Assembly: GCA_040285825.1 (NCBI GenBank)
Contig: JAUPSS010000008.1
Span: 1,054,001 to 1,118,000, forward strand
DNA length: 64,000 nucleotides
Direction: 5' to 3'
Source: Eukaryota sp. TZLM1-RC
Lineage: Eukaryota; Protista; Metamonada: BaSk clade
Shown: piece by piece, positions 10,192 to 56,000 of the stretch
How the letters are laid out: every line of letters begins with the position of its first letter
Numbering within the stretch: position 1 is the first letter of the stretch
Notes under the pieces: generated by a model
Database searches by the model: none
What the model was told of the DNA's origin: nothing
The model's input: the letters and a program-made list of their open reading frames with translations, nothing else
Made by a program: the position numbers and the translations under genes

Positions 10192-10317
10192 CTGCAATTC
10201 CCAACAATAGACAACTTGGAACTTTTCCATCATTATACTTTGCAGGTAGAATAGGTACACAAACTATATACTATACAGATATTGAGGCCTTTCATTTAGA
10301 CTTATTCTGGCTCCAGC
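10192..10317 (-). mobile_element. Isolated Fanzor 3'-end remnant (last codons plus omegaRNA-like region)
   Basis: Minus strand GCCAGAATAAGTCTAAATGAAAGGCCTCAATATCTGTATAGTATATAGTTTGTGTACCTATTCTAC aligns with 47583-47648 (the 'NERPQYL' end of copies A and B). Confidence 0.75.
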
Positions 10318-10626: not shown

Positions 10627-13137
10627 CTAGAAAATCTTCATCCATACCCTCATTGCCGAAATGACAGTTGAATCACGATGGACACGAGTATAATCATCAT
10701 CATATCCCTTCGAATTGGCAGAAAAAGCTGTGATCTTTGGCACAGACTTACATCCTTCACAAGTTTCTCTACACAATGCACAATCAGACAAACCATCTGG
10801 AATTCCAAAAGAGTCATTTTGCCAATAAAAGCTTGAAAGAATCAATCTAATGGGATATTGGTTATCATTGTCAGAGACTCCAAACGGGTTTAGGAAAAGT
10901 TTTTGTTCGAAATGTCGATGGCTGCGAGGACCACAGTTTTTAACCAACACACAGCCCTTATCATGCATATCTCGAGAGGAAGAACCAGGCATCTGTTGAT
11001 CATGATCGTCATTCTGAGCAACCATTCTGTGCATCATGTCATGCACGCAGTCACCGGCTGGTTGAACCGGATAAGAAGAATCCCATATTTTAATTTTGTC
11101 AACATCATCATTTGAAAGACCTTCTATGGAGAGCTGCTTTGCAAAGTTTCTGCCGTAATTATACCCAGAGTTGTCATTACAAAGAAGCAAATCTAATTCT
11201 CCACCAAATAAAACCTCAAGCCACGCAACAAAGTCTTCAGGAAGCTTACCACCCATTGATTTGGCTACTCTACCAAAAATTGAGCTTAGAGAAGAAGGAG
11301 AAATATGCTTTGCGGCATCAATTCGAAGTCCAGAAAAACCAATGGATAACCCTTCTACAATAAAATCAGCAATTCTCTGTTGAACATAAGGTTTCTCGGT
11401 GTTCAAATCCACAAGACCACTTAACCAACCAGTATTTAAAAGAAAAGGATCTGTCCAAGAATTTAAACTCTTTTCACAATGAAAGTCTAACGGGAAGTAC
11501 GGAACTGCGGTAAACTCTTGTTGTGGAGCTTTTCTTGTAAACTCATTTGGTGAATATGTCCAACCCTGGGTAAAGAATGGAGACTGCCTTCCATAAAGTG
11601 CTCCTGTTGATGTCTTGTTTCCCCAAGTTGAACATCCATCAGAGGGATTACGATGGTTAAGAATGTCGTTTCCTGAACCAGTCATATGGTTGACAACTGC
11701 ATCAAAGTAGACTCGAACCCCATGATTACGACATTGGTTAATCATTGATTTCAACTGCTCTCTAGATCCCCATCGTCCATAAAATTTATAAGAAACTGGT
11801 TGATACATAAAGTACCAAGGATTAAGGTCAGAATTGAATGGTTGTGATGAGAGCAATGTTTCCATTGGGGGAAACACTTTAATACCAAGGTAACCTGCAT
11901 CACCAATAAACTCACATTCCTTCTCAATATCTTCATATGGCCAACCGAATAGCTCAATAATGGCACCTTTTTGACCATTTCTGTAATCACCAGGACGTTG
12001 TTTGACTTGAGGTAAGTTCCAGACAAAAGGAACAGGTTCTAGGGCAACATCAACCGCATGTTTTCTAGACTTTAAAACAACAGAAAGCTCCCTCTTGTAA
12101 GATGAAGTAACTTTCATTGACTCTGACATCCCACATTTACCATCAAAACAGGTAATAACATCATCATCATTATCTCTCTTAAAAGTAACAACTTTCACAG
12201 TTGCTTTAGTTCGATCACTATTGTACTGGACTGATGCATATCCGGCAATGTAACCAAGACCTTCAAAAGAAGAGAGGTAGCCACTAGAGCTATTAGATGG
12301 TGTCTGCCAAGCGTGGAATGCATAATGCTCATCTGTATCTGCCTGTCGTCCTTCACATTGATTTTCATGATAAATCTCACATCCAGGAAGTGGTGGTAAG
12401 GGACATTTCTCTTTACACGTCTTATCCTCACACAAGTTTAAGCCTGATTTACAGACAATGTGACACTCACCACTAGAGCAATTTGCACTTTTGATTCCAC
12501 TTGTAGAGTCAGCAATGCATTTGGAATTGCACTCACCACAGTGTTCATTGTTATTGGAAAAATTGATATTGCAGTCATTGCAAGCAGGAGTACAACAACC
12601 AAACTTAGCTTCACACATACACTTTCCATCAAAACTGCATCTTCCATGGCCACTGCACACCTTTCCGTCTGGGCTACGGGGACAGCTTTGGGAGCAATCA
12701 TAGCCAAAGTAGGAGTGATCACAGACGCAGATATCATCGAGACAGTATCCATGACCAGAACAAAGGCCATGAGGAGTTGATGGACAGGTTTCTTCTACTT
12801 TATTAAGAAAGCCATTCTTGAGGGAGTACAGTCCTGGATTGTTAATAAAGTAGTTTCGTCCGCCATTGTTGTCCCAATCGTGGAAGTTGTTGGTGACAAA
12901 CTCAATGGCAGAGCTGTTCACCACGACATAAAACCAGTCTTGGAAGGAGGGATTAGTGGATTCCGAGAAAGGGATACCAGGGACTGGCGTCCACTTATCG
13001 GAATCGAATGGTCTATAATGAAGATTGGCAACATTCCAATTTGAGTAGTAGTAGAGGCCGATAAGATGACTAGAACAAGAAACAATTCCGACACTGAGTA
13101 AAGAAATAATGAGTAAATGCATCAGAAAATGCTGCAT
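10627..13137 (-). CDS. Secreted alpha-amylase (GH13) with N-terminal starch-binding-like and EGF-like Cys-rich modules
   Basis: Signal peptide, 'DWDNNGGRNY' CBM-like motif, CSGHG EGF repeats, and GH13 regions DAVVNH, GLRIDAAKH, WLEV and NDDHD. Confidence 0.88.
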   Translation of the reverse strand: MQHFLMHLLIISLLSVGIVSCSSHLIGLYYYSNWNVANLHYRPFDSDKWTPVPGIPFSESTNPSFQDWFYVVVNSSAIEFVTNNFHDWDNNGGRNYFINNPGLYSLKNGFLNKVEETCPSTPHGLCSGHGYCLDDICVCDHSYFGYDCSQSCPRSPDGKVCSGHGRCSFDGKCMCEAKFGCCTPACNDCNINFSNNNEHCGECNSKCIADSTSGIKSANCSSGECHIVCKSGLNLCEDKTCKEKCPLPPLPGCEIYHENQCEGRQADTDEHYAFHAWQTPSNSSSGYLSSFEGLGYIAGYASVQYNSDRTKATVKVVTFKRDNDDDVITCFDGKCGMSESMKVTSSYKRELSVVLKSRKHAVDVALEPVPFVWNLPQVKQRPGDYRNGQKGAIIELFGWPYEDIEKECEFIGDAGYLGIKVFPPMETLLSSQPFNSDLNPWYFMYQPVSYKFYGRWGSREQLKSMINQCRNHGVRVYFDAVVNHMTGSGNDILNHRNPSDGCSTWGNKTSTGALYGRQSPFFTQGWTYSPNEFTRKAPQQEFTAVPYFPLDFHCEKSLNSWTDPFLLNTGWLSGLVDLNTEKPYVQQRIADFIVEGLSIGFSGLRIDAAKHISPSSLSSIFGRVAKSMGGKLPEDFVAWLEVLFGGELDLLLCNDNSGYNYGRNFAKQLSIEGLSNDDVDKIKIWDSSYPVQPAGDCVHDMMHRMVAQNDDHDQQMPGSSSRDMHDKGCVLVKNCGPRSHRHFEQKLFLNPFGVSDNDNQYPIRLILSSFYWQNDSFGIPDGLSDCALCRETCEGCKSVPKITAFSANSKGYDDDYTRVHRDSTVISAMRVWMKIF

Positions 13138-14340: not shown

Positions 14341-14559
14341 GTTGCTGTTTATATTAATTTTTTTAATAAGAACATCGTTTGAAAATTAGTTTCCAACATT
14401 GATTTTTGATAAACTTTGTTTTAGAATATGTTTCTTCAATAAGTGGGAATTTCTTCAAGCTTTGAAAAATTTGTGAAGGTATCTCAACAAACTTAGAACC
14501 TTTGTGAGAAGCCAATGATAATAATCTCAAATAAGACCTGGGCCAATTTTAGAACTTCC

Positions 14560-16810
14560 AAATCATTGTAAAAATATTAACTATTTTGATACAAAAGAAC
14601 AAGTGTTATTATATTTCATTCACTTTTTGATTGGTCACAAAAGTTATGTTTTGACTGGTTTTAATATTAAAGCATTTGATGTTCCAATATTGTGCAACAG
14701 GTTGGCAATTTATGTAAATACTCTTCCACAATTGATGGAATCAGAAGATATTCAACCATTTCTATCCGCTTTTTGGCAGAAGGTTTCCTCCAATTTCGAT
14801 TGTTTAACTATCTGTGATTCATTTTTGTATGTAAACAAATCTATTACATCAAAGTCGAAGAAATCCTTGAGATCTCATAGTTGGTTCCTGTTAAATTAGT
14901 CTAAAGGGTATTTTCGTGATACTTTTAAACCAGTTTTACCAATTTATTGTTTTAGGAGTGGACCCCAAGATACAATTAATTATTGTTTCAAAGATAGTGT
15001 GCTTGGTTTAAAATTATTTCTACTGTTTCAATCAAACAATGGTGGTATTTCTATTTTTCCCATCAATCATTGTACTAGATTGAGGGCCTCCATCGCAGAA
15101 ACTATCAAAACGAATTTATAAGTCAATGTACAATTGAGGTATGCTCAATATATATTGAAAAATTTATTAATCTATATTTTGAGAAAATGGAAGTTGAAGA
15201 AGAGATGACCTCAAGAGAACAGACTGTTTTTCGTTGGAGGTTACGTCAAGTCAAGAATCTATTTCTTCAAACTAATCGTAACAATTTTCCGACTACTGAT
15301 GATGAAATCTTGAACGAAGACAATGAAAATTGGTTGAATCAATCAGCAAAAACTGTTATTTTAGAAAGTACTCATTCCAAAATTTGTAAGTTATTAGAAG
15401 ATGAGAATTGGGTGAATTCAATTTTTCCTATATCTATTGTAGTTAAAAATTCAAAAAATGAGGAGCAGACTATTGAAGTTAATTCATGACTTTCCACTGT
15501 GCAAAAGTATCCCCAATCTTTTATCAAATCAGCTATCAAGATAAATAATTTTATAAAAGAAGCTGAGGGAAAAACATTTAATGCTATTCCCATTGTACGT
15601 CATGAAACTCCTGGATTTTTCGAAGTTGATAGCCAAGGACTATGGGGTATTTTGCGTTCTTTTTTTACAAATGATGAAATTAATGACAAGAAAAATAATT
15701 CGGAGTGGAATTCAATGACTGACATTCGACTTTTGAGTCCAGAAGAACAAAATTTATTTTGGTCATATTTTTTGGAATTTAATAGATCATTTACTAAAAA
15801 AGGCTACAAGTTTAACAACACCATAAAACCTGATGGTTTTGGAGCCTGTATTGAGCTTGCAAGATAGGATTGTATTGGCATGTCCTTCAAGCCTGATAGT
15901 GCAAAGTTTGCAACCGCTGAAAACTATCTGAATGATTTGGATGTTGAATTTCTAACATCAAAACACAAAGTAAAACCTTGGTAAAAGTGATTTACTTTAT
16001 CTTTGTAGTCAAAAAAGACTCAAACTTAATGCAAAAGACCAACTAAAAAGAGATAAACAATATGAATGGCTGAGATTGACAGAATTGGAGTGGTCAAGGG
16101 TATCGAGAGTTCACCAAAAATTCAGAAAATTGAAAAGGAAAGAGTACATTTTACACAATGGAATCACAGTGGAAGAAACAGAAGCTACATTATCAAAAGA
16201 ATCATCAAAATCTTCCATTTATAATATTTTCTATTCTCATGTTGCTTCCAAGCTGACGAACATGACATTTACATTTGAGTACTACTGTTTGATGATATGG
16301 CACATTCAGAAAATGCAAAGATACGTCCATCATCAGAAAACAGAGGCTAAGTTATTAAAAAGAATGGCTGAAAAGCAATGGAAGCAAGAAGACACTATTC
16401 TAATGTTTGGTGACAATGGCAATAAGAGAAAGAATTTAAACCATCATCGATCAAGTAGAGGAGTTTGATGGAGAAATTTCTTGAAAAAAATGGGTTACAC
16501 AGTATGTTCAGTTGATGAGAGAAACACATCTTCAAAGTGTCCAACTTGTTATAACCCAGTAAATGTATTTCTTGATGTTGAGAATCCTAGGCCATGGATG
16601 AGAGAGAAATATCATACTGTGAAATGTCATGCTTTGTTAAGATGTGGATCTGATGTTTGTAGAGAAGAATGTGATGGGTGTGGAATCGTAACAAGTTAGC
16701 ATGTATCAACATCTAGGCAATTGTAGATTATTTTGTAGCGGATAGTGTTGGTGATAGGCCTCCATATCTGTCATAAGTGTAGCTTTTTACTACAGTGAAT
16801 CTGTAGCATT
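14560..16810 (+). pseudogene. Degenerate exonuclease-Fanzor element (lineage D)
   Basis: PolB-exonuclease motifs 'EQVLLYF...VLTGFNIKAFDVPILCNRL' and 'NYCFKDSVLGLKLF', then Fanzor pieces 'YKFNNTIKPDG', 'GKSDLLY', 'ILMFGD', 'VDERNTSSKCPTC', 'CHALLRC', 'WNRNKLACINI', 'DRPPYLS*'. Multiple stops and frameshifts. Confidence 0.85.
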
Positions 16811-16893
16811 TTTGGATTTTTGCATTCAACCAAACAGACCACAAGAATTCATCCTGCATCCCAAACAATCTGTTACCCAATGCCACTTCTCCA

Positions 16894-18411
16894 ATGTCAA
16901 TTATTGATCTAGAACTTTCATCTCTACATGTTACTTATGTTTTCTGGGGTCTTATTGCTGCATCATTCGGTCTTTTTGGCAGAATTTTCCGAACAAGGTT
17001 GATGATTTCTGCTGCTCTTTATTCTTTACTATGGGGACTCCTTCTTTCATTAATTCTATCCACAATTACTACAGGATTAGTCAACACTGAACGTCTCATC
17101 CTCAAGGAGATCACCAAGGCTGTTGCTTCCATCCAAGTTTTTGTCACGATGTTATATCTCCCTCCCCATTTTTACAAGAGAAGGTGGAGAGAAATAACTG
17201 CTTTACTAACACTGCACAAAGTAATTACTAGCTTTATTAGTTTTGGTTTATTAACGGCCATATTTGGATCAGTTTCTGGTGTTTCTTGGTTATGGTACCT
17301 CACCTTAGCTTCGTTGTTTTCAATCACTGATCCTGTTCTTGTTACAGAGTTCTTTAAGGGACATTTTGCTCAAAAGCATTATCCCTGCGAACTTCGTTTT
17401 ACTTTGCTGTTTGAAACCAGTGCCAATGATGGTTTTGGTTGGCTTTACGTCACCTTACCACTGGCCTTTCTTATTTGGCCTCAGTATGGTGTTCCTTCTG
17501 TACTTCTCCTGTGGTTTGTTCGGTTTATACTTTGGGAAACAGTATTGGGTGGTTTATTGGGGTTTTTGGTTGGTTTTGGAGGAGCAAAGTTGTTTAAAAT
17601 AAGCGAAGAGAGAAATTGGTTTGATAGAAGTAGTTTTATAGGATTTACTGTGGCTCTTACCCTTTTAATGCTAGGATTATCATTGATTCTAAATTTAAAT
17701 GCTTTAATTGCTGTTTTAATTGGTGGTATTACCTTCAGCAATAACTTAAGAGGAAGCGAAAGAGGCCTTGAAAGCCAATACCAAGATTCTTTGGATTCAC
17801 TTCTTAACTATACCGTGTTCTTGTTATTTGGCCTCTTTATCCCTTGGGTATCGTTTGGGGAAATTGGACTGGTTAGGTTACTTTTGCTTGCTGTTGGTCT
17901 TTTTTTATTCCAACGAAGTATTTCCTTTTTTATTATAACCAAAACTTTTTCCTTTACTCATTTCTCCAATATTGATAAAGTTTACACTGGTTTATTCAAT
18001 CCAATTGGTAGTTCTGCTATTTTCTGGGCTATCAGGACAGAAGAACTGATCCCATCTCCTATTCCGATAGTTGAAATTACTTACTGGGTTATCATCATGT
18101 CTGTTTTAGTTTTTGGTACTATCAGCTCCCCTTTAATTTACCTCTACAAGCGACTACAGCCACAGGTTACCGCAATTAATAGAGAGATTTACGAACAACG
18201 ATTAGTAAAAACAGAAGAAGAAGATCTTAATGATTTAAGAGTCATTCAAAGTCTTTGGAAGTCTCAAGACCCACATGACCAGTCTAAAGTCAATCAATTG
18301 CGACGAAAAAGGGAGCTTTTTCGAGAACCTAGTGTTTCTGAATTTGCTGTTGACTCTATTATTGATTTATATGAAGAAAGATTTTATCAACCAAAAAGAA
18401 GTAAAGATTAA
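16894..18411 (+). CDS. CPA1-family Na+/H+ antiporter (NHA1/SOD2/NhaP-like)
   Basis: About 12 hydrophobic segments with 'TDPVL' and 'ETSANDG' CPA1 motifs. Confidence 0.85.
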   Translation: MSIIDLELSSLHVTYVFWGLIAASFGLFGRIFRTRLMISAALYSLLWGLLLSLILSTITTGLVNTERLILKEITKAVASIQVFVTMLYLPPHFYKRRWREITALLTLHKVITSFISFGLLTAIFGSVSGVSWLWYLTLASLFSITDPVLVTEFFKGHFAQKHYPCELRFTLLFETSANDGFGWLYVTLPLAFLIWPQYGVPSVLLLWFVRFILWETVLGGLLGFLVGFGGAKLFKISEERNWFDRSSFIGFTVALTLLMLGLSLILNLNALIAVLIGGITFSNNLRGSERGLESQYQDSLDSLLNYTVFLLFGLFIPWVSFGEIGLVRLLLLAVGLFLFQRSISFFIITKTFSFTHFSNIDKVYTGLFNPIGSSAIFWAIRTEELIPSPIPIVEITYWVIIMSVLVFGTISSPLIYLYKRLQPQVTAINREIYEQRLVKTEEEDLNDLRVIQSLWKSQDPHDQSKVNQLRRKRELFREPSVSEFAVDSIIDLYEERFYQPKRSKD

Positions 18412-22578: not shown

Positions 22579-23752
22579 ATGAGAAGCCACATTTTTTGTG
22601 GTACAAATTTTGGTGGTGTTGATTTTCATAAATCAGGCTACCTTTGTAAAGCTGCCTTTATTGGAGGTGGAAAGAATTATATTTATGAATTTGTGAATCG
22701 TTTTCCTGAAAAAATTCACCTCATTGAAAATTGTGGCAGCTCTTATCTAATTTCCTTGCAACAGGAAATTGAAACTCTTTCACCCAATATTTGGTCTAAA
22801 TGTTTCCCCTCTGATATTGTGGAACTTCCTTCAAGAAGCTTGCTCTCCTTACCACTGACTTTTGTAAAATTGCAGAAAAAAATCCCGTTTTTGCAAACTT
22901 CTTGATTGATCTTGAAGACAGTTGCTCAAGTTGCCTAATCTCCCAAATTCCCAACATTTATGGCCTTCTACTTAATGATCACCAATGGACCACCGCAATG
23001 AGAATGAGATGTTTTCTATGGCCTTGTTCTTTACCAAATGATTTAATTTGTCGCTGCAAGAGTGTTGTTACGCTTTCCCATATTTTAAACTGTAAGTATT
23101 TTATAACTTATCGCTCAATTGTTCATGACTCAGTTCGTGATCAATTATATGCCATGTGCAAAAGTTTCAATATAGAGGCATTCATTGAGCCACTAGTACG
23201 TAAGCTGTCTTCAGATCAAACTGATGATTCCTTTGGTAAAAGAAGGGCAGATTTAGTAGCTCCAGGGATCGAATGTGTTCTCAATGTTGTAGATGTTGTT
23301 TCAGTTGATGTTTGCAAAAATTCTGCTGCTCGTTTAGTGTATTTTGCTAATTCGCCGTTATCTAACGCCGAAAAAAAGAAGATAAAAATATGAAGAACCT
23401 TTGGCACAGTTAGGTAGAGTGGAACATGTGAAATATCAGTTTGTGCCGTTTGCAATTTCTCTTTTTGGCAATATTGGACCTTCAGGGTTGCACTTTTTTT
23501 GAAAATTTTAAAAAACTGTTACTGAATAGGTCTGGTAAAAGAATGAACCCCACTTTCTGGTTAAATAGAATTGTTTTTTTGCATTTTCAAGTCTATTGCA
23601 ACAATGATTTCAAAGGCACTTTTAGCTATTGGCGTAGAATATGAACGTAATGCTGTGAGTAGGTTTAGTAACAGTGACGCTTGTTTGGAGGATATTGAAT
23701 TCTAGGTGGGTTTTTTTATCTCAATAAATATTCCAGTTTCTTTTAAAAAAAA
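22579..23752 (+). mobile_element. 5'-truncated RLE-type (CRE/SLACS-like) non-LTR retrotransposon remnant
   Basis: CCHC knuckle 'CRC...HILNC', 'HDSVRD', restriction-like endonuclease 'RRADL...VVDV...AEKKK', and 'VPFAISLFG'. Frameshifted, with AATAAA at 23723 and an A-run at 23745-23752. Confidence 0.8.
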
Positions 23753-28085: not shown

Positions 28086-28207
28086 TTGTTGAAACAAACA
28101 GGCTACTCGAAGTTTAGCTTTGTGCAGTTGGTAGGTATCTTTAAAGATACATTTCGTAAAATCATTAACTAATAAACCAATACATTACTGTATAGTAATA
28201 AATTGGG

Positions 28208-28290
28208 TGGGAAATTCCCATAAATACACGATCAATTTTCGTGTGGAATAATTACAAAAACTATCTACTACACAGATACTGAGGCCTTTC
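28208..28290 (-). ncRNA. Putative Fanzor omegaRNA scaffold, copy A
   Basis: The 53 nt after the stop codon are identical to copy B and contain the stems ACACGA/TCGTGT and TGGGAA/TTCCCA. The position at the ORF 3' end is as expected for omegaRNA; true ends unknown. Confidence 0.55.
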
Positions 28291-30039
28291 ATTGCCACTC
28301 ATTCTGGCTTCAGCAATTGCAAACATATTCAGACAAGCCAGCTTATTTCTATTGAAAAGCTTTGTTGAGCCTTTGTTACTGAGTTTGCAACTTTGACTGT
28401 TACAAGCTAATAAACCATGACATGTAGTAACTGGAGTCTTTTCTCTTCTATACACTCTGGGATTTGTTACTCTCAAAAACGTAGCAACCTTTTCAAAACA
28501 AACAGGACATTTTGCTGAAGTGAAAGCTTCATTAATCATCAATACTTCAAATCCATTTCTCTTCAGAAATTGAATCCATCCAATGCCTCGAGTAGGTCTC
28601 TGATGTTTCAAATTCTTGGAACCTTTTTTACCATAATCACCCATTAGTATTAAAGTGTCTTTTGGATTGCCAAAATTCTGAACAAGGCTTTTTAACAACC
28701 GACTTTCAGTTTTTTGCTTTTGGCCTTGTTGTCTGGCTTACATTTCTGACCTTGTAAATCCCGACGAACAAATTCTACTGCAATATTAAATCCATCTGTG
28801 TGAATAATGTTGTTGAATTTATAGCTCTTCTGTTTGAACATTGGCTGGTTTAAATCGAGAATATTAGACCAAAAGTCAAATTGCTGAGGTGGTTTGAATT
28901 TCGTAATTTGGGCTAGTGTATTGACCATTTTTAATCTCTGATCAGGCAACAAATCGTCCATCAATGTTTGTCTTATAATTGTCCATATTGTTCTTGTATC
29001 AATGGGAAAATATCCAGGACCTACAGTGGTTGAAACAGGAGAAATATGATATGGTTTTTTCTCTCTACTGGAAATATATTGGGCAATTGTAATTGCTGGT
29101 GTTAGGAATATTTGAGGATCTTTTTCAACAGCGTCTGCAAGAAAATGTATATCCACTGGAAATATGTTATCAACTAAATTCTCATCAGTGACCAAATTCT
29201 CAATTTGGCAAGTAAAAGGCTCAATGAGACCTTCAAATATGTCTCTAAGTTCATTATTTCTTATATCATGTTGTTCACATAAAGCGAAAAATTCATCATT
29301 CAGAAGGTCTGAAATATTTTCAGGATGATGAAACAAAGAACTCAAGCAATCTCTATCATCAACTAAAAACAAATTTTTGAATTGACGAAGCCTAAATCTA
29401 TATAGTGAAATAATGGTAGATAATGGTGTTGAGTATCCACCCAGCTTGTGCATTTCCGATAACTCACTTTCCACATCTACTTTGTCAAAATAAACATTAA
29501 TAAATCGATTAATATGTTTTTCATAATTTAGTTTCAAATTATTCTCAAAATTGGCAAACATTACTGGGGCTATGTACTCAGGTGGTCTACTGAATCCGTC
29601 AGTTGGAAATCGTGGAAAAAACTCAGCTCTATATCTCAGATGGTCTACATAACTCAATGTTTTGTTCAACTTTTGTTGTTCAAAGGTGTTCGATAATCTA
29701 TAATCTCCTTCACCATAAACAAAGTTTTCAAAATCCTGTGGAAATGCACTTTTTGGTTTCAGCATTTCTTGCTCATAATACTCAGCTGAAATATAACGAA
29801 TTCTGGCCATTAATGATTCATATAATTGGGCAGATATTCGTGGTAATGACAAATTACGTTCAAAACAAGACTGTAAATACAGCTTTAAGCAACAAGTGGT
29901 GTGAATACGTAACTGTTGAAATTTTAAAGCAGTTTCTCTCAATTTGAGTATCACATTCGAATGTTTAACCATTGAGTTGACGGTTGCTCGAATGGTTTTA
30001 TAAGATGATAAAATAAATTTGTCTTTCTGAAACAACACG

Positions 30040-30795
30040 AAAAGTTTCAGACATAGTGAACAATCTTGAAGCCCAAATTGAATTAAAGTTTGTCTCAGTG
30101 GAGTAGTAGCTAAACAATCAACAGGTAAAATATTGGTGAATTGTTGATGAAGATTGATTTTCTTCTCATTAACCATTTTGTAGGCCAAATTCCCCAAACT
30201 ATGACCATATTGGATTTTGATGAATTTTTTTGCAAACACCAGTGTATCTAAAAGATAAAAACCATTTTCCCTGATGACAATTTCCCTCCATCTTGGTGAA
30301 AGATGATTAAGTACATCCACTGTTGAATCAACTGAACCAGTGGGAAATGGTAAACCAAAATAATTGAATCGATTCTTTAAAACTTGTAAATCAAACTTGA
30401 TTAGATTGTGATTAAAAAAACAATGTGGTTGATAATTACCAATAATATTTGAAAATCTACGAAGTAAAATTTCTTCGTTATCAAATAATTCCGCCTGAAC
30501 ATTCAGATTTATTTGAGGTAAAGACGTAATTTGGTCACTCATTTTCAACAGCAGCGAATATTTACTTTCCAAAAAGAAGTTGTGTTGATCAAACCTTCCA
30601 ATAGCAATTGAAACTAAAAACACTTTTTGATTTGAAATCCACTCATCAAACTCCTCATCATTTTTTCTTTTTAAAAGATTTAAATCATCTTTTCTAATCT
30701 TGTCAATTATCTGATCAGGAGGCAGAAATTGATTGTCCTGATTTTGATAAAGATGACCATCCTGATAGGTTTCAAGATCAAAGCACATAACAATG
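30040..30795 (-). other. PolB-type DEDD 3'-5' exonuclease domain within the Fanzor ORF
   Basis: ExoI 'MCFDLET', 'FDNEEILLRRF..II...QPH', ExoII 'HNLIKFDLQVLKNR', 'LLDTL...SLGNLA', ExoIII 'FGLQD'. Confidence 0.85.
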
Positions 30796-31076
30796 GGAAG
30801 ATGTTGATTTGAGGTCATTGATTTGAATTGAATCAATGGATCAGGCTTGAAACCACTACGACTTGGCTCAATTTTTTTGACCTTATTCGGTTTCAATGGT
30901 TTTTTTGTCAAAATCTGCCTGTTCTCAATATTCAACATTGAATTCTCAATACAAATTTCTCGGTTCAGTGCATTTTGTTGTTTTTTCAGCTTACGCTTTG
31001 ATGTTTGTTGGTCAAAAATCACATTTCTAATAATTTTTGATGGAGGAGTTGATTCAAAATTAGATCTTCTCTTTCT

Positions 31077-31136
31077 GGGACCAGGATTTGCTTCAACATC
31101 TCCATCAATTGTTAAATCAACAGTAAATGGGTTTGT
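31077..31136 (-). other. 2A-like ribosomal skipping (StopGo) peptide
   Basis: In-frame TNPFTVDLTIDGDVEANPG|P matches the D(V/I)ExNPGP consensus, with the typical upstream 'DLTxxG'. Confidence 0.8.
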
Positions 31137-31194
31137 TGATAGAAGCGGTTGGCAGCTTCTGGATTGAAAAGATAAATTATAAACATAATAATCA

Positions 31195-31667
31195 AACTCA
31201 ACATTATCAAAATAACAATTTAAGACACAACATCCCATATCTAAAGTGCAAGAATCTAAACCACAAAAATGAACAAACTCATAAGCATCAAAACAACAAT
31301 GTAAAACAAAACATATACAAAAGAAACATCCCACATCCACAGTACAAGTACGTAAACCACGAAAAACAACAAACCCAAAAACATCAAGACAACCTTTCAA
31401 AACAAAACACAAACAAGAAAAACATCCCATATTCAAAGTACAAGTACCTAAACCAAAAACATCAACAAAATCAAAAACATCAAAGTAACAACAATGTAAA
31501 ACAAAACACAAACCAGAACAACATCCCATATCTACAGTACAAATAGCTAAACCATGAAAAACAACAAACTCAATAACATCAAAGTAACAATTCAAAACAA
31601 AACACGAAGAAGAAGAGCATCCCATATCCAAGGTGATTAGCACCATTGCTGATTCAACAGCACCCAT
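31195..31667 (-). repeat. Five degenerate 96-99 bp tandem repeats encoding Cys/Phe-rich 32-33 aa units
   Basis: CATCCCA(T/C)AT anchors at 31231, 31327, 31423, 31522 and 31618 (spacings 96, 96, 99, 96). Unit: CT(L/V)DMGCxxxxCFVLxCxFDxxxFVxFxGL. Confidence 0.85.
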
Positions 31668-31960
31668 ATCATGACTCACATGATGACTCAGAAAAGTGCA
31701 ATACTCTACCCCCACGGAAGAATCAGAACGACGATTTCGATAAGAAATCGAGGCTCTGACCTTCCGTTTATTCCTGTAAAACAGAATGACTGTTCCCGAC
31801 TGAGGAGTTCGGGAAGAAGTACTCGGCTGTTCTTTGAACAACAGGTTGAAGGAGGAGGTGGGAACTGAGTCCGTAACCTCGTTATCCTTGTTCTCCTTTT
31901 GTGGATGCATATTTTGACCAACGAAATTATTTGTGGAGTTTTTCAAGACGTTTAACCTAC

Positions 31961-32092
31961 GAACCTTTATATGCACCTTTACGAACACATGGGGCTGTTG
32001 CCACTGGTCCACTGGCACTTCATACCCAAGGCAACTCATCTATGATTGCTGCGGCAGTTGAACATTCCTTCATTGTTTACTCCACAGATCGA
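31961..32092 (+). pseudogene. Captured fragment resembling the UTP21/WDR36 N-terminus
   Basis: 'PLYAPLRTHGAVATGPLALHTQGNSSMIAAAVEHSFIVYSTDR' resembles the remembered UTP21 start (F.PFR..G.V....P......G.....TCVG..F..YD). Isolated and ends in a stop. Confidence 0.55.
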
Positions 32093-32101
32093 TAGATACC
32101 C

Positions 32102-32233
32102 GATTCTTTGGATTCACTTCTTAACTATACCGTGTTTTTGTTATTTGGCCTCTTTATCCCTTGGGTATCGTTTGGGGAAATTGGGCTGGTTAGGTTACTT
32201 TTGCTTGCTGTTGGTCTTTTTTTATTCCAGCGA
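32102..32233 (+). pseudogene. 132-bp duplicated internal fragment of the antiporter gene (17785-17916)
   Basis: Direct alignment gives 129/132 identity. Confidence 0.95.
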
Positions 32234-36279: not shown

Positions 36280-36815
36280 GTTTTATTCTGCAATTCTGCA
36301 ATTTTGCACTTTTTAGCCAAAAATTGCGGGGTAGCAAGATCCAATGCTGATTTTTTAAACACATCAACAGCGAGAGCATCAATAACTTTGATTAATTCAT
36401 CGGAACCAGGGGTAATTGAATCATATTTTGCCCAAGGCGTTATCATCATCAGGGGACAGCCTACACACAGGCGGTTCTACAAATGCTTCAATGTGGTGAT
36501 TTTTGCACATGTCAACGGTTGAACTCTAACAGCATCATCATCAACCGAGCGATATGTTTTACTAAACTCACAAAGCAATAAATCATCAAAGTTCATTAGT
36601 TGACCACAACGACAAATTCAATTGTTGGGTACACTTCAAACCACAGAAAACACCTCATCTTTAGGGCAATCTTCCACTTATCGTCGTTGAGCAAAGAACC
36701 ACTGATGATGGAATTTTGAGGGACAAGACAAATTGAACAATTGTCTTTCAGGTCAATTAAAAAGTTGACAAAAACGGGATTCTTTTCCAAGCTAAGTCGA
36801 ACAGCACGATTCAAA
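36280..36815 (-). mobile_element. Degraded RLE non-LTR retrotransposon 3' fragment
   Basis: 'LLNDDKWKIALKMRCFLW' and 'PGSDELIKVIDALAVDVFKKSA' align with the 22902 ORF ('LLNDHQWTTAMRMRCFLW', 'PGIECVLNVVDVVSVDVCKNSA'). Confidence 0.75.
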
Positions 36816-37263
36816 TTTTCACAAAAATTTACTATTTATTTTGCAAATAAGCGTATGTATATCTTAGAAAAGCCAAACATCTGGACGGAATTTCTTGACT
36901 ATCAGTAGAAAATCATTTGATCCAATTTTGAGCACAGATGCATTCAATTTCACTCTGCAATGACACTAAATAAGCGACGAAGCAATTGTGTTTTTATTGC
37001 TATTTCTCAACAAAACGGTTTACAGATTCAAAAGAAGAAAATTTTGTTCAGTTTTACACAAAAATTTGGATTTCTTAAAACCTCTAATTTGGTGCTTTTG
37101 TGGTGTTCGGTATTCTCTGAAAAAATAATAGCTTTATAGTCATTGGTCAACATTTTCAATAATTGCAATAAGTAATTACTAATGATCCAATCAATTGGCA
37201 ATGTAATTTTTTAACCATTTGCCACAACTAAATCATCTTTTTTCTCCTCTCAATGACTGACAC

Positions 37264-40620: not shown

Positions 40621-40858
40621 TCCAAACAATATTTATTGAACATGTACACTTAATAAAATTAATTCGAAACTAATGGGACGAAAATCATTGAACCAAGATT
40701 TCCTCTACAAAATCATGATCTGCTTGCTGTCTAGCTAAAGCTTCTCTAATTTGATTGAAAAACCGAGGTGATCTATTTCCAAAATTAAAACAAAGAAAAT
40801 ATTTCACTTTTCAAAAACTCAATCCCATCAGTGTAAAAAGGACACTTATTTCATTGTT

Positions 40859-43554: not shown

Positions 43555-43628
43555 AGGCTAGCAGCACACAAACGTCAAATAGTAGTAACAAGTTGAGATT
43601 TCTTGTGGATGTAGAAATGAAATAAATC
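43555..43628 (-). promoter_or_regulatory. Shared pre-ATG cassette, copy 4
   Basis: GATTTATTTCATTTCTACATCCACAAGAAATCTCAACTTGTTACTACTATTTGACGTTTGTGTGCTGCTAGCCT|ATG, collinear with copy 1 over ~70 bp. Confidence 0.6.
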
Positions 43629-43629
43629 T

Positions 43630-45100
43630 AGACTTTCATTTCCTTTAATATACTCATCCACAACATGAATCATATTAAGAACAACATTGACATTACGATT
43701 CCATAGACATCCACACTTCTTGCAAGTCAGTGATCCATGTCTAAGGACCGTTGGAGTCTTTGCTCTCCTGTAAGGTCTTGGGTTAGGTACTCGATGTTTC
43801 TTTGTATTTTCACCTTCTTTTCTCTCGAGTACACATGTATGGCATCGACAACTTGTTCTATATTCATCAAGTAGCAATAGACGGCAGTTACGTTTTTTAA
43901 ACGTCTTTCGATAACCAACATTCTTTCTAGGTGCTTGAGGTTTAAAATTGGTTTGCTTCCAATCACCCATCACCACAAAGTTATCTTCTGGACCTCCAAA
44001 TTTATTTTCAAATTCATTCATCCATTTTGCTTCAAACCTCTCTGTGGCCATGAATCTTCGCTATTTTATGACTTTTAATTCTTCATTAAAGTAAACAGCT
44101 CCAACATGGAGAGAAGAGCTGTTTTTGCCTTGAAGTAGTATAGGAATTCTTCATGATCTAGATTTTTTTTGAAAATTGTTTTAATACTTCTTCCCACTCC
44201 TTTCAGTTTTGTTTTTGATAAATCCATGATTCTTCGACATCCTTAGATTTTTTGATGTTCTGTTCAGAGTTTCTCCTCTTCTTTGAGAAGCAGTGAGTCT
44301 CTTGAAAGTATATTCCTTTAGTTTTATTTTTTTTTGTTTTCGGAGGAGGATTTTGTTTCTGCCCGAAGTCTGGAATCTTTTGTTTTGTTTTGTTTTTCAT
44401 TCTGTTAATAAAACCTCTTTTTCTTCCTTTGTTTTTTCCTGACGTTATTCGTCCCATTCTAATCTTGAATCTGTTGGGGTGACTGTGGTTCAGTTAACCT
44501 GTTTGGATTTGGGCAATTTAATTTTCGTTTCCCAGCCATCATTTTTCCCTAATACCAGGGTCGATTACTGTGTGAAGGTAATGTTTATCAGCTGATTTCG
44601 TGAAAGTGCGGTCAAGTACGGATCTTTTTCATCTTGTTCGGGCATTTTAAGGCGACTCTTCCCAACTTTTCTTTCTGTTGAATTTCAACTCACGTACTCA
44701 ATACCTTGTCTGTCCTTTTGTTTTTTCTTTAATTGGAACCTTGATTAAACTGCGTTATCTTTTATAGACGATTTTTCATCTATTGTCAAAAATAGAACTG
44801 GAAGAATATCTGACCGAATATTTTGGCAAAACAGAATTGTATATTCTAAATTTAAAGGAATGCATGGCGTTGTTTCTAGCTCGTTGTTATCACTAGGAAG
44901 ATTTTATGAAGAAATTGCTGTAGGTAAATTTTCAATGGTGGATGTGGAATTTGAGGACTTTTAGTTTTAAACAATTTCGTTTGAATAAAAATCAGTTTTA
45001 GACAAATCTTGCTGTTGGGAAGCGCTTTTACGTGTTCGAAAAATCCATTTCCAATATTGATGTTGGAAGTTTTTAATATCTCCTCCAAGAAGAGCTTCAG
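43630..45100 (-). pseudogene. Degenerate Fanzor (lineage E)
   Basis: RuvC-I 'TVIDPGI' (~44551-44571), 'VVMGDW', 'LLDEYRTSCRCHTC', 'NPRPYR', and 'HGSLTCKKC...WNRNVN..LNM'. Many frameshifts upstream. Confidence 0.8.
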
Positions 45101-46304
45101 AATTTGTCATGTAATTTCATTCATCAGGGATCAAAACTATGTAAATTGCCGGTGTGTTTCAGAAGTCATTCCCAGGTATTTCAGAGGTCCCAAGTGGAAA
45201 TAAATTGTTTTTAATTGGAAGTGACCCTGGCAATTTCAAATAAAAGTTTGCCTTATATAAGCAAAAACCGGAGGCTAAACATTTCAGAGGATCATCAATT
45301 AAGATTCAATTATTAGTTTGAATTAAACGCAAATCTACCTTTACATTGGGTAAAAATGATTGTAGATTACGAAGTAAATATACGGTTCTAGTCAAGAATA
45401 ACTGTTTCAATTCATCAATGATCTCAGATTGATCTGACAAAATTGTCTTCAGTTTATACAAATATCAATTAGGACAAATCTACTATGAACAGAAGTATAA
45501 AGGTTGGGAAATAGTTTCAATAATTCAATTCTATAACTTAATTTTCAGTAATCATTATTTGTAAAAATGCAAAACATGAGCAAAATGCTAATTAAACACT
45601 ATAATACGTGATACTGAAGCTGCCTCAACTATTTTCTTTCTTGAAGAGGTTACAGTTGAAGGAGTTGCTTTAGGTGATAACAGTAACATATTCAACCAAG
45701 GGAACGTGTTGTTTCAATATGTATTTTGTGATAAATTTTCTTAAATGGACTTTTTAAACAAATAGGAATAAATTGTGTCAATAAAAAAACAACCAGTATT
45801 TATTCTATTAACTAGAGAACAAGTGCACGAATAGTCACAACAAATGTGTGTGATTGAATTGTGTACTGTTGTTGTTATGTTTTACATCTCAACAACCCTA
45901 ATTGACGAAATATTGTTTAGAACCACGTTTGTTGTTGAGGAGAACCATGATCCACATAAAATCCTTTAGATAGCCACCATTAGCAGTAGCCACCTGATAG
46001 CTGTCTAGGGGCGAAAAGAGGGTTGGGTATAGAAAAAGATAACCATTTAGAATTTAGAGGTGTCTGTGATGTAATTTCCATGTCTCACTCGCGACTGAAG
46101 TAGTGGGCACTTGGGAGAATATAGAGTTGAGCTGAGACCAGTAGGTTAAGAGATCATTGGTTGAAGTGGAGGAAGCCAGATCAAGCAGGTGTGATGCCAC
46201 TAAAGCACTAAAGAAGGATTGAGTCCAAAAGTAGGGTCATTGGAAGACTCTTCCTCCATGGAAGCCAGTGTGGACTTAAAACCTCTTAGCACTAACCTCT
46301 AAAT

Positions 46305-47683
46305 CCAGCAATTACATTTGCCCAATTTATTTCTAGTAGAGAGGGGAAACCTTATCATATTTCTCCTGTTTCAACCACTGTAGGCCCTGGATATTTTCCT
46401 ATTGATACAAGAACAATATGGACAATTATTAGACAAACATTGATGGACGATTTGTTGCCTGATCAGAGATTAAAAATGGTTAATACACAAGCCCAAGTTC
46501 ATAGATTCAAACCACCTAAGCAATTTGACTTTTGGTCTAATATTCTCGATTTAAATCAACCAATGTTCAAGCAGAAGAGCTATAAATTCAACAACATTAT
46601 TCACACAGATGGATTTAATATTGCAGTAGAATTTGTTCGTCGGGATTTACAAGGTCAGAAATGTAAGCCAGACAACAAGGCCAGTATTTCTGATTTATAT
46701 ATTCATGATGTTGATGTTGATGCTTTTCAACACAAACGAATTGTTGTTTGTGATCCTGGAAAACGTGATTTATTGTATTTTGGGAGTAAAAAGACTGATG
46801 AAGAATTAGCCATGGTTCCTCAGAATGAAACCGAACAGCAAAGAAATAGTCGGGTGATGAATCAAGACAAGAAGTACAAATGGTTGAGAATGACTCAGAT
46901 GTCCTGGTCTTTGAAAAGTAGGATGAATGAAAAGCAAAAACGATGGGCGACAAAGTATACTGAGGTAGATTACGACAGGAACCAAATGATAGAGTCTAAC
47001 GAAATGACAATTGAAGATGCAAACACCGAATTATCAGCATTTGTTGCCAATTCAGCAACTTTTATAGATTTTTCCAACTTTGTGGTTGCCAAACTTCGGC
47101 AAGTTTTTTTGACAATTGACTTTTACAGTCTTGACTTGTGGAGCATTCATAAAATGCAAGCTGATATTCACAAGCAAAAGACTGAAAGTTGGTTGTTAAA
47201 AAGCCTTGTTCAGCATTTTGGCAATCCAAAAGAGACTTTAATTCTAATGGGTGATTATGGTAAAAAAGGTTCCAAGAATTTGAAACATCAGAGACCTACT
47301 CGAGGCATTGGATGGATTCAATTTCTGAAAAGAAATGGATTTGAAGTATTGATGGTTAATGAAGCGTTCACTTCAGCAAAATGTCCTGTTTGTTTTGAAA
47401 AGGTTGCTACGTTCTTGAGAGTAACAAATCCCAGATTCTATAGAAGAGAAAAGACTCCTGTTACTACATGTCATGGTTTATTAGCTTGTAATAGTCAGAG
47501 TTGCAAACTCAGTAACAAAGGCTCAACAAAGCTTTTCAATAGAAATAAGCTGGCTTGTCTGAATATGTTTGCAATTGCCGAAGCCAGAATGAGTGGTAAT
47601 GAAAGGCCTCAATATCTGTGTAGTAGATAGTTTTTGTAATTATTCCACACGAAAATTGATCGTGTATTTATGGGAATTTCCCA
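46305..47683 (+). mobile_element. Fanzor element copy B (5'-truncated, intact RuvC/Zn-finger half)
   Basis: Near-identical to copy A from 46305. Open frame to the stop at 47630 with 'VVCDPGKRDLL', 'ILMGDYG', 'VNEAFTSAKCPVC' and 'NRNKLACLNM'. Confidence 0.9.
47601..47683 (+). ncRNA. Putative Fanzor omegaRNA scaffold, copy B
   Basis: 47631-47683 is identical to 28260-28208 and contains two stem-loops. Confidence 0.55.
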
Positions 47684-53075: not shown

Positions 53076-56000
53076 ATGTTCAACATCCTACATGTTCTTC
53101 TTGCTTACTGTGTCATTTCTTTTGCTTCTGAGGTTCATCTTGTCATTCCTGACACTGAAAACCAAGTCTTCTATTGGACCTCAGATTCAACCTGGAATTG
53201 TTCTTACCCTACCGAGTCATCCACAGTCTTCGTAGACGGAAAAGGAATGAACCCCATAATCGTTATTGATGTCCCTCCCAATGTTCATTCCATTCATCTT
53301 TCTGATGTTACTTTACGCTTAGAGTCACATGTTGTTATTACTGGTATTACATTATTAGATGGTGTTATAATTGAGTCTGTTACTGAGCAGCTCATCAACT
53401 TCACTACCACTGACTTGGAGGTGCTCAAGCCTTGTGAGTTCTATCTGATCAACTTTATTCTAAAAGGAAATGGCAAACTTGCTAGTCAATTAGCAACGTC
53501 ACAGTCCATTTTCTTGGTTGATGATGGTGCTGAATTGGTGACTGAAGGTGGTAGGTCAAGCTTATTTGATCTACAAGCATGGGGTAATGGTGGGCATGGC
53601 AGAACTGGTACTGGAAATACTGATAATTCACATTCACTATTACCAGTAATTACTGATGAAGTTTTTACTTTTGTTTCTGGTGGATATCATCATTCATTAG
53701 GCCTCACTAGTGAAGGTACCCTTTTTGCTTGGGGGAGGAATAATAATGGTCAATTAGGACTAGGTTCAGAATCAGAATTTTATGATTTCCCTCAACCTGT
53801 AGATTTAAATAATGTTGTTCAAATTTCTGCCGGCTTTTCCTTTTCTCTTGCCAGAACTGAAGATAACTTTGCTTATTCATGGGGTACTGGTGGGAGACTT
53901 GGTCATGAAGGTACTGAGAATGAACTTGAACCTCGGCGTATTGAATCACTGGAAAATGTTATTGATGTTAGTGCCGGAGATCGCCACGGGTTGGTGGTGC
54001 TATCAGGTGGCACTGTTAAATCATTTGGATCTAATTGGGCTGGTAAACTTGGTATTGGAAGTTCTTTTGGTATAGAGTCTAGACCCACACCTCATGATGT
54101 GGTAATTACGCAAACTGTCAGAAAAGTTATTGGTTGTGAAGAACATTCTTTGTTTATTACTGAGGATGACCAGTTAATGGCTGCCGGACTGAATAATATG
54201 GGACAGCTCTGCATGGGTGACGAGTCCTACTGGGAAAATGATGTTTTTATTGATACAAATAGATACCAACCTGAAAAGATCTCAAAATATGTTGATTATA
54301 CAGTAATTCAAGCCAGTTGTGGTCAATATTATACAATTTTCCTAACAAAAGAAGGTGATGTTTATAGTTGTGGGGATCATTTGGGTAGAACTACAGACTC
54401 TATTCCTCGCCACACACCAGGTAAAGTTCAAGGTTTGGGCAGGGTAAGAAGTATTCATTCTGGTTATCGTATTGCTTTTGCTATTGATTTCAATAATGTT
54501 CTGTTCAGCTGGGAAGGTGATGACGTTGAAGCTTCACTGAATGCTGAAACAAAAGATTATAATGTGGCCAATCTTTACACTGGACAATACCACTTTTTTG
54601 TCAATTCTCTTCTTCCTTCTATTCAAAGTACTGATGAATCACTATTGGTTATTGATGGAACCTTTAATCATGATTTGGCCTTTACTTTCAATTTAAACAT
54701 CTTAGTCGAAGTTCAGTCACACGGGTCATTAATCTGCAGTGGTCAAGGAGTTTTATTTAATCAAACCCTCACAAACTTTGGGTTGATCACTGCACGTGAT
54801 GATGCTGAACTTATTTTTAATCGAAATTTATCACTTTTGAGTGGTAGTTTTGTCTCTGGTCTTCCAATTACTATTCTTGCTGGTATCAACATCTCAGGAT
54901 ATGGTGTGTTTGATTCAACATTGATTAACTATGGAATCGTCATTGCAACAGGTGAATTTATTATTAATTATGACTTTGTGTTACATGATTCATCACAAGT
55001 TTTATTTGGGCAACCCCTTTCAAATTTGAGGGTGCCTTCTCTATCTGTAAATGGAAATATTACATTGTTGAATACTCATCTAGGTTCAGATCTGTATTCT
55101 TTTGGCTTTGTGGAAGTGTTTGACATGTACTTGCTTGGGAAAACTGAGCTCACCAACGTCAATTTTACTGTGCTCAATCTTGGTACAATTTCTGATCAAC
55201 TAACTGTTAAAAAGTCTGTTTTTCTTGTGAATGAAAAGGCTTTCCTAACTATAGATGGCCAAGGTGCAACAACTGATGAATTACAAGCATGGGGTAATGG
55301 TGGGCATGGCAGAACTGCTACTGGAAATACTGATAATTCACATTCACTATTACCAGTAATTACTGATGAAGTTTTTACTTTTGTTTCTGGTGGATATCAT
55401 CATTCATTAGGCCTCACTAGTGAAGGTACCCTTTTTGCTTGGGGGAGGAATAATAATGGTCAATTAGGACTAGGTTCAGAATCAGAATTTTATGATTTCC
55501 CTCAACCTGTAGATTTAAATAATGTTGTTCAAATTTCTGCCGGCTTTTCCTTTTCTCTTGCCAGAACTGAAGATAACTTTGCTTATTCATGGGGTTATGG
55601 TTGGGGTGGGAGACTTGGTCATGATGATAGCGAGAATGAACTTGAACCTCGGCGTATTGAATCACTTGAAAATGTTATTGATGTTAGTGCCGGATATGCC
55701 CATTCACTTGCAGTGATATCAGGTGGTAAAGCAGTGGCATGGGGACCAAATGGTAATGGTGAACTTGGAGATGGAAGTGCAACTCAGAGGGATATTCCTG
55801 TGGAAGTTGCTACCACTGAAAGTATTAAGAAAGCTATTGGTTGTGTTTGGTTTTCATTATTTATTACTGATAATGATGAGCTAATGACTACTGGTCGCAA
55901 TAATAGAGGCCAGCTTTGTTTAGGAAATCAGCATGATGAAACTAGTCCCGTGAAGATATTGAATTATGATCAGTATACAGTAATTCAAGCCAGTTGTGGA

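Follow-up and report, generated by a model that had tools for sequence, protein, structure and literature searches.

A proofreading-type exonuclease fused to Fanzor1 in mobile elements of the metamonad genus Skoliomonas

Results

Organization of the element in copy A

The stretch of DNA analysed here (the window; 64,000 nt of contig JAUPSS010000008.1, positions 1,054,001 to 1,118,000) comes from Eukaryota sp. TZLM1-RC, a member of Skoliomonas, a genus of free-living anaerobic metamonads (soda-lake protists). It is gene-dense and intron-poor, with host genes including MCM2, Exo70 and a Na/H exchanger, and it contains copies, here called A, B and C, of elements that encode a 3'-5' exonuclease of the family-B DNA polymerase (PolB) type joined to the nuclease Fanzor1. 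The elements of the window are 85–94% identical to loci of Eukaryota sp. TZLM1-RC. In copy A, the main open reading frame (ORF) is a single continuous minus-strand frame (32039-28692, 1115 aa), and it does hold all the motifs that a first-pass annotation, made from the letters alone, had quoted: DVEANPGP at aa 314-321 (31100-31077), PRKRR at aa 321, KRKLKK at aa 348, and the exonuclease motifs FDLET at aa 420, HNLIKFD at aa 544 and FGLQD at aa 655 (Table 1). That annotation also placed a RuvC half behind the wedge and recognition (WED/REC) region and described it as complete in copy B. This holds for copy B, where RuvC-I, RuvC-II and RuvC-III are all present, and not for copy A, where alignment with copy B revealed an out-of-frame loss of 487 nt, so that RuvC-I is gone and the rest lies out of frame. 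Because this deletion removes RuvC-I, copy A is dead as a nuclease. The two copies are 94–97% identical where they overlap; copy B carries the RuvC-I segment absent in A and is without the N-terminal half.

The Cys-rich repeats at the start of the copy A frame had been counted as part of the system, a reading that has to be given up. The DNA is a T-rich minisatellite private to copy A: the repeats occur in no other copy examined and bear no coding signature, in-register units differing at codon positions 1/2/3 in 11/6/5 cases. An open frame is cheap in such DNA, since some frame stays open in 14% of trials under a repeat-aware null, and a functional Cys-rich domain was rejected.

Table 1. Features of the exonuclease-Fanzor copies in the window.
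Feature	Positions	Strand	Description
Copy A main ORF	28692..32039	-	Variable leader, 2A, basic linker, exonuclease, Fanzor1 WED/REC; ends 9 codons past the deletion
Minisatellite	31229..31631	-	96-nt unit x 4.2, read as Cys-rich hydrophobic repeats; leader before 2A
2A/StopGo peptide	31077..31127	-	17 aa ending NPG/P (break before the final Pro); aromatic residue at -16 from the final Pro
Basic linker	30795..31076	-	Probably disordered; runs RKRR and KRKLKK resembling a nuclear localization signal, a putative function; fast-evolving, exchanged between families
Exonuclease	30030..30794	-	Family-B polymerase-type DEDDy 3'-5' exonuclease; ExoI D421/E423 (30779, 30773), ExoII N545..D550, ExoIII F655..D659
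Fanzor1 WED/REC half	28722..30014	-	Abuts the exonuclease directly
Deletion junction	28721..28722		487-nt internal deletion; RuvC-I (DPG) lost, frame shifted, copy A inactivated
C-terminal remnant	28261..28721	-	Out of frame; RuvC-II Glu (28530), C4 zinc finger, RuvC-III Asn (28347), stop 28263-28261
Candidate omegaRNA scaffold and sharp right end	28208..28290	-	Two or three short hairpins, the last terminal
Putative guide	28193..28207	-	15 nt of 3' flank, differing among copies; by analogy with SpuFz1 (PMC10432273)
Captured host piece	32102..32233	+	132 nt of the Na/H exchanger gene (source 17785-17916, 98% identical), on the ragged left side of copy A
Copy B	46299..47683	+	5'-truncated; RuvC-I Asp (46752), RuvC-II Glu (47361), zinc finger, RuvC-III Asn (47544)
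Copy C	14534..16830	+	Exonuclease-Fanzor in decay, its family divergent (~25-30% identity to A); ExoII and ExoIII (YCFKD) still recognisable
3'-end remnant	10217..10317	-	Related family, 81-85% identical to the copy A end; own terminal hairpin

The exonuclease domain

Residues 411-594 of copy A match the Pfam family DNA_pol_B_exo1 (PF03104) with an E value of 1.5e-7 and 31.5 bits (cut-off 23), and the NCBIfam model of Pol II matches 20 of the 22 exonuclease rows. The AlphaFold model of the window domain reaches a predicted local distance difference test (pLDDT) score of 91, and Foldseek relates it to PolB proofreading domains (E 5e-10), those of Pol alpha, HSV-1 Pol, Pol epsilon, Pol delta and viral PolBs being about equally similar. 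The first-pass assignment to the proofreading fold of family-B polymerases is thus borne out by profile and structure alike. Since Pol alpha, delta and epsilon, bacterial and archaeal Pol II, and the herpesvirus and giant-virus polymerases score alike, at 12–19% identity, no single polymerase can be identified as the donor. Profile searches found no palm, fingers or thumb domain, WED beginning directly after ExoIII, and no transposase domain either, as the annotation had said.

The motifs of a DEDDy enzyme are present (ExoI D-x-E, ExoII N-x3-F-D, ExoIII Y-x3-D). Every full domain in the alignment keeps D and E in ExoI as well as D in ExoII, and the metal ligands are conserved at an overall identity of 25–35%. 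ExoIII reads YxxxD in most families; F replaces Y in copy A alone, whose nearest relative, locus L010, has YGLQD. The exceptions are H for the ExoIII D in one family of assembly GEM-RC1 and T for N in the homologue P0028.

The Fanzor half

Profile searches with the second half returned SpuFz1, PpFz1 and GtFz1 at the top (E 4e-66, 5e-66 and 5e-34), and the top seven Foldseek matches are all Fz1 structures (E 2e-22), with the bilobed WED/REC fold of Fz1, which is larger than in Fz2 or TnpB. Copy B and the intact homologues have a split RuvC, with DPG at RuvC-I and a RuvC-II Glu that stands some six residues ahead of a C4 zinc finger. All family members share the RuvC triad D-E-N, the outside relatives having D-E-D, so that every member shows R-N at RuvC-III and not the R-D motif of Bao and Jurka. 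The Asn was considered as a mark of a dead RuvC, a reading that was rejected: GtFz1 is active with Asn at the third RuvC position, and the same change raised the activity of SpuFz1 (PMC11423790). For this reason the RuvC nuclease is probably live in the intact members. In a midpoint-rooted RuvC tree of 19 rows, restricted to matches long enough for both RuvC motifs, the six Skoliomonas rows (exonuclease-bearing or closely related families) form one clade with support of 99/97.

Conservation and distribution of the fusion

Homologues of the fusion were found in three Skoliomonas assemblies (TZLM1-RC, GEM-RC1 and TZLM3-RCL), where they make up at least ten families whose representatives are 24–55% identical to one another, and the exonuclease occurs in every family having an intact N-terminal half. 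Two uninterrupted and unspliced genomic ORFs run from the exonuclease to the Fanzor C-terminus (L008:6986-10876, 1296 aa; L012:11714-14596, 960 aa). These were relied on instead of the gene models P0152, P0162 and P0016, which contain predicted introns bridging frameshifts in L011 and L012. The exonuclease-Fanzor core is about 940 aa long, and proteins in gene models reach about 1,850 aa. The architecture of 2A, complete exonuclease and complete Fanzor rests on overlapping copies (A, L009, L010, L011 and P0138), and among the copies examined no single uninterrupted ORF holding all three was seen.

From ExoIII to the first conserved Fanzor (WED) helix the distance is exactly 50 residues in eight families, and this constant spacing points to a fitted rather than a loose fusion. 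The ratio of nonsynonymous to synonymous change (dN/dS) in the exonuclease is 0.21–0.24 against L001 and L002, at dS above 0.6, with similar values for the Fanzor part. Judged on these comparisons, the fusion of exonuclease and Fanzor1 is genuine, conserved and under purifying selection. One might suspect that chance had placed a piece of a polymerase gene beside a Fanzor, or that the assembly had wrongly joined the two, given that the long-read assemblies have many frameshifts and that copy A is broken. This reading is refuted by homologues of the same build, which come from three independent assemblies and make up ten families or more, and the probability left to it is negligible.

Two sets of loci deserve separate mention. 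In TZLM3-RCL, the gene model P0132 (2027 aa) joins a DEAH helicase to a full exonuclease-Fanzor, which is either an in-frame host fusion or a model artefact. In GEM-RC1, five copies of one family (L003-L007; 98% identical, ~4.07 kb) have a core left end with a hairpin and mosaic upstream flanks. All five contain the same single-base homopolymer shortfalls after 2A, and at least four also at RuvC-I, which could be long-read error or the mark of a defective subfamily. Programmed frameshifting was considered for them and rejected, no canonical slippery site being present.

Outside Skoliomonas, a phmmer search of 1.84 billion representatives gave no exonuclease-Fanzor, all non-Skoliomonas Fanzor matches being without the exonuclease. 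Nor was the fusion found in word-indexed searches, which were length-limited (one among the best 8000 candidates), or in IMG/VR, metagenome contigs and phages, where the contig scans detect close relatives only. No description of it was found in the literature searched, including the main Fanzor papers; subscription papers and Repbase lay outside this coverage. On the three points that the first-pass annotation had named as decisive, its reading stands: the domain has a profile match, intact genomic copies retain the exonuclease, and the fusion was not found catalogued. The phrase 'new RNA-guided system' goes too far: by its sequence the guided core would be an ordinary Fanzor1 carrying a new accessory domain, known from one genus.

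2A peptide, leaders and Ulp1 modules

All three species have a 2A peptide ahead of the exonuclease, and it is kept even where protein identity falls to about 35%. It has the form D(V/I)ExNPG/P, with H for E in one family; seven of the eight examples show W or F at -16. The motif combines the GDVE core of class A with an aromatic residue in the register of the class B Trp. The register matters for class B 2A peptides, and a W-to-F change lowered activity 2.3-fold (PMC12338488). What lies upstream varies: the minisatellite in copy A, repeats and host-like DNA in L010 and L011, and short hydrophobic stretches in the TZLM3 families, while the GEM-RC1 copies hold their mosaic flanks in common. The linker after 2A is common to the otherwise distant L010 and L011 (96% over 166 nt).

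Protease domains of the Ulp1/C48 type, one or two in number, separate 2A from the exonuclease in some families and stand between two 2As in L011. Such domains, single or tandem, stand in the same ORFs at L009:7001-10579, L011:6690-10707 and L012:8821-11714 and in P0028 and P0163; L011 apparently reads 2A-Ulp1-2A-exonuclease-Fanzor, interrupted by a retroelement fragment. In one family no 2A was found in the ORF. The proposed release of the exonuclease-Fanzor by 2A consequently keeps its conserved peptide, with two qualifications, that Ulp1 domains intervene in some families and that the ORF found for one family is without a 2A. With skipping predicted from the motif, the 2A may act as an insulator through which captured leaders become usable to the element.

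Element ends and mobility

The right end is sharp: five family-A copies stop at the same terminal hairpin with unrelated flanks, and the other families have different end sequences with similar short terminal hairpins. A conserved sharp 3' end followed by a variable flank is the layout expected of an omegaRNA, which suggests a candidate omegaRNA by analogy with known Fanzors. The hairpin 3' end described in the first-pass annotation does exist; its hairpins are weak singly (z -0.3 to -1.7 in single-sequence folding), and an Rfam search of the 3' end gave no match. The left ends are ragged, so that no target-adjacent motif (TAM) can be read from them, and 5' truncations and internal deletions are frequent.

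Searches at the elements revealed no terminal inverted repeats (TIRs), no fixed target-site duplication (TSD) and no DDE transposase, and none of the elements showed an HUH transposase. The TSD search gave nothing convincing, its best result being a 13-nt direct repeat in L009 that starts exactly at the element right end and recurs 9.7 kb upstream (L009:967-979 and 10632-10644); it is possibly the TSD of a much longer element, or chance. Hairpins occur at both core ends of the GEM-RC1 family, and a PIF1 ORF near L003 is without a Rep-type Pfam match. The element lacks a reverse transcriptase and has no tail, either of poly(A) or of repeats, neighbouring reverse transcriptase fragments being separate insertions. 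The copies are mosaic: between copy A and L010, dS is 0.02 in the exonuclease, 0.26 in WED/REC and 1.1 in the linker. Because dS differs so much by domain, recombination between copies is frequent, as expected from gene conversion. The putative guide of copy A (28193-28207) matches the coding strand of copy B (46321-46335) at 14 of 15 nt, 22 nt from the truncation point of B; shuffling gives about 0.4% per guide for this match, which was noted post hoc for one of six guides.

Other elements and genes in the window

Copy C is a third window copy in which an exonuclease is followed by a Fanzor, and it had been overlooked in the first-pass annotation. A further Fanzor family lies at 43575-44526 on the minus strand; it is about 31% identical to the copy A C-terminus, has R-N at RuvC-III and shares 79% DNA identity with L010:15057-15954. 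Right ends of Fanzors often stand directly before a same-strand host ATG (window 47683, 43554, 7742 and 23864; L002:10813; L007:11746). That of copy B overlaps the MCM2 ATG, and a 55-nt common repeat abuts three other window ATGs. The cause could be promoter targeting or selection; the 55-nt repeat could also be a promoter motif of the host. Fragments of non-LTR (long terminal repeat) retrotransposons with a restriction-like endonuclease (window 22584-23738, 36332-36857, 40628-40777, 44678-45006 and 45748-46054) are frequently found inside or beside Fanzor elements, likewise at L001, L008, L011, L012 and P0004. The window also holds a single-exon ORF of 3403 aa (53076-63287). Its start resembles a signal peptide, its RCC1-like blocks are duplicated and its C-terminus is hydrophobic, so that the product is probably a surface protein of the host; a relative lies in L011. 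A secreted-type alpha-amylase with CBM25 and EGF domains lies at 10627-13137 on the minus strand.

Discussion

Tentatively, and at somewhat short of even odds, we regard these loci as a Skoliomonas-specific clade of transposase-free Fanzor1 elements whose proofreading exonuclease, predicted to be active, was captured from an RNA-primed family-B polymerase. As to what the exonuclease does, we assume, with a probability of roughly 0.45, that it removes a 3' flap of the non-target strand so that repair copies the element into an empty allele (homing). Translation would start from whatever leader sits at the ragged 5' end, and 2A would free the element's own protein, while the element 3' end and about 15 nt of flank would form the omegaRNA, as in Fanzor1. 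The D-E-N RuvC, if it behaves like those of SpuFz1 and GtFz1, would cut the empty allele 16–21 nt from the insertion point, leaving at the TAM-side end a displaced single-stranded 3' tail of 16–17 nt, whose counterpart in the donor lies beyond the element. With this tail untrimmed, repair would be free to pass over the element. Single-stranded 3' ends are the preferred substrate of proofreading exonucleases, and the tethered 3'-5' enzyme might trim the tail towards the left junction, whereupon strand invasion would prime synthesis into the element as gene conversion. To reach new sites, the element would depend on an enzyme acting in trans, a transposase or a reverse transcriptase, and neither was identified. 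The distances follow SpuFz1, which cuts the non-target strand after base 16–17 and the target strand after base 20–21 (PMC10432273). A precedent comes from the T4 td intron: I-TevI cuts at a distance of 23–25 nt from where the intron inserts, and homing efficiency is affected by the 3'-5' activities that 43Exo and DexA provide (PMC2988022; PMC12153337). The first-pass annotation had proposed end resection or trimming of the omegaRNA 3' end instead. Classical resection is rejected, for it runs 5'-3' and a 3'-5' exonuclease has the wrong polarity, whereas the geometry fits removal of a 3' flap.

Several observations weigh against the homing reading. No exonuclease of this kind is needed for other Fanzors and TnpBs to home or persist; homing requires an allelic empty site, and it cannot account for the unrelated 3' flanks of different copies, most of which are, besides, broken. 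The GEM-RC1 family whose copies are 98% identical is without the ExoIII Asp (YNYQH), so that its recent spread, as read from these copies, would have needed no complete exonuclease site unless complemented in trans. Reach to the cut strand is also uncertain in the full-length model, where the junction at 378-392 has pLDDT below 50 and the predicted template modelling score (pTM) is 0.47.

The same enzymology would serve a nuclease that destroys ends, in which the exonuclease, in the manner of engineered TREX2 fusions, chews the cut ends, blocks re-ligation and thereby deletes or kills targets such as empty alleles, rival elements or invading DNA. Copies riddled with internal deletions and 5' truncations agree with such an activity, as does the fit of the copy A guide to copy B. 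A selfish element, however, gains little directly from destroying its target, the self-match is post hoc, the nearby L001 insertion is an ordinary LTR insertion with a 4-bp duplication, and fusions of TREX and T5 exonucleases impaired MmeFz2 (PMC12923547), so that we consider end destruction unlikely. Slightly more doubtful still is a cargo or structural role, in which the domain would be a captured module like several others and would persist because it binds single strands, helps folding or has a function independent of the guided cut. These elements do collect modules (2A, Ulp1 and host fragments, with Ulp1-type domains before or after 2A), and one family keeps the domain though ExoIII is lost; but while the Ulp1 modules come and go, the exonuclease is constant, at fixed spacing, with its metal ligands conserved at 25–35% identity. 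The exonuclease might, finally, act on the element's own nucleic acids, either defining the sharp right end of a single-stranded transposition intermediate by stopping at the terminal hairpin, or trimming the omegaRNA 3' end. In every family the 3' end is sharp and falls at a terminal hairpin, and the 5' end is ragged, without TIR or TSD, like CRe-1/2/3 (PMC3627910). Yet no element has shown an HUH transposase, and ordinary Fanzors mature their omegaRNA without an exonuclease. Trimming of the omegaRNA is unlikely because the domain matches proofreading domains of DNA polymerases in every library, and not RNase D/Rrp6 or RNase T. A role on the element's own nucleic acids is thus, of these three alternatives, the one we find hardest to credit.

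Among known systems, the Skoliomonas element resembles the Fanzor1 proteins SpuFz1, PpFz1 and GtFz1 in the DPG of RuvC-I, the shifted RuvC-II Glu before the C4 zinc finger and, putatively, the conserved structured 3' end, and GtFz1 also in its D-E-N triad. It differs from them in the PolB-type exonuclease of about 250 aa N-terminal to WED, the 2A, the optional Ulp1 and a core of about 940 instead of about 630 aa; the Fanzor1 element SPu-1, moreover, has TIRs, whereas the Skoliomonas elements have none. With CRe-1/2/3 of Chlamydomonas, which are non-autonomous Helitron2 elements (PMC3627910), they share sharp 3' ends, 5' truncation, internal deletions, sequence captured on the 5' side and the lack of a transposase, but here no variable-length TSDs were detected and no Helitron partner verified, and an exonuclease is not reported in CRe proteins. 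As proposed here, td homing involves an endonuclease cut some 20 nt away from the insertion site, with a contribution from a proofreading exonuclease of family B (PMC2988022); there the proteins are separate, act in trans, are protein-guided and belong to a phage, in contrast to one RNA-guided polypeptide of a eukaryote, and the likeness is one of working and not of membership. The trypanosome L1Tc non-LTR element likewise places a 2A near the ORF start, before its enzyme (cited in PMC12338488), while the Skoliomonas element is without a reverse transcriptase. A tether between an RNA-guided nuclease and an exonuclease has been engineered in TREX2-Cas9 and in the fusions of TREX1, TREX2 and T5 with MmeFz2, which are artificial and flexible, whereas the Skoliomonas fusion is natural and of fixed spacing. 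In the CRISPR trimmer-integrases Cas1/Cas2-DnaQ, a 3'-5' DEDDh exonuclease fused to the integrase trims 3' overhangs in spacer acquisition; both systems thus join a DEDD exonuclease to a mobile-DNA enzyme, although DnaQ is of the DEDDh type and works with an integrase, not on a guided break.

Since TREX1, TREX2 and T5 fusions all impaired MmeFz2 (PMC12923547), a natural and conserved fusion is of practical interest: a co-evolved pair could be a template for editors with defined ends and better templated insertion, or with larger deletions. The 2A peptides add an example of StopGo from a metamonad and from a DNA element, apparently as an insulator against captured leaders. The role of Fanzors in their hosts is still open (PMC10432273), and a rigid 3'-5' exonuclease kept across at least ten families predicts a step after the cut, namely flap removal for homing or destruction of the ends. 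A bolder reading, which we hold improbable, is that these are self-sufficient, transposase-free 'cut-trim-copy' elements, in which one 2A-released polypeptide makes an RNA-guided break, trims the DNA with its own exonuclease and, in some families, remodels SUMO or ubiquitin-like marks through Ulp1, so that repair both homes and disperses the element; if true, DNA in eukaryotes would have a further, new way to move, and the protein would be the first OMEGA effector in nature with two nucleases.

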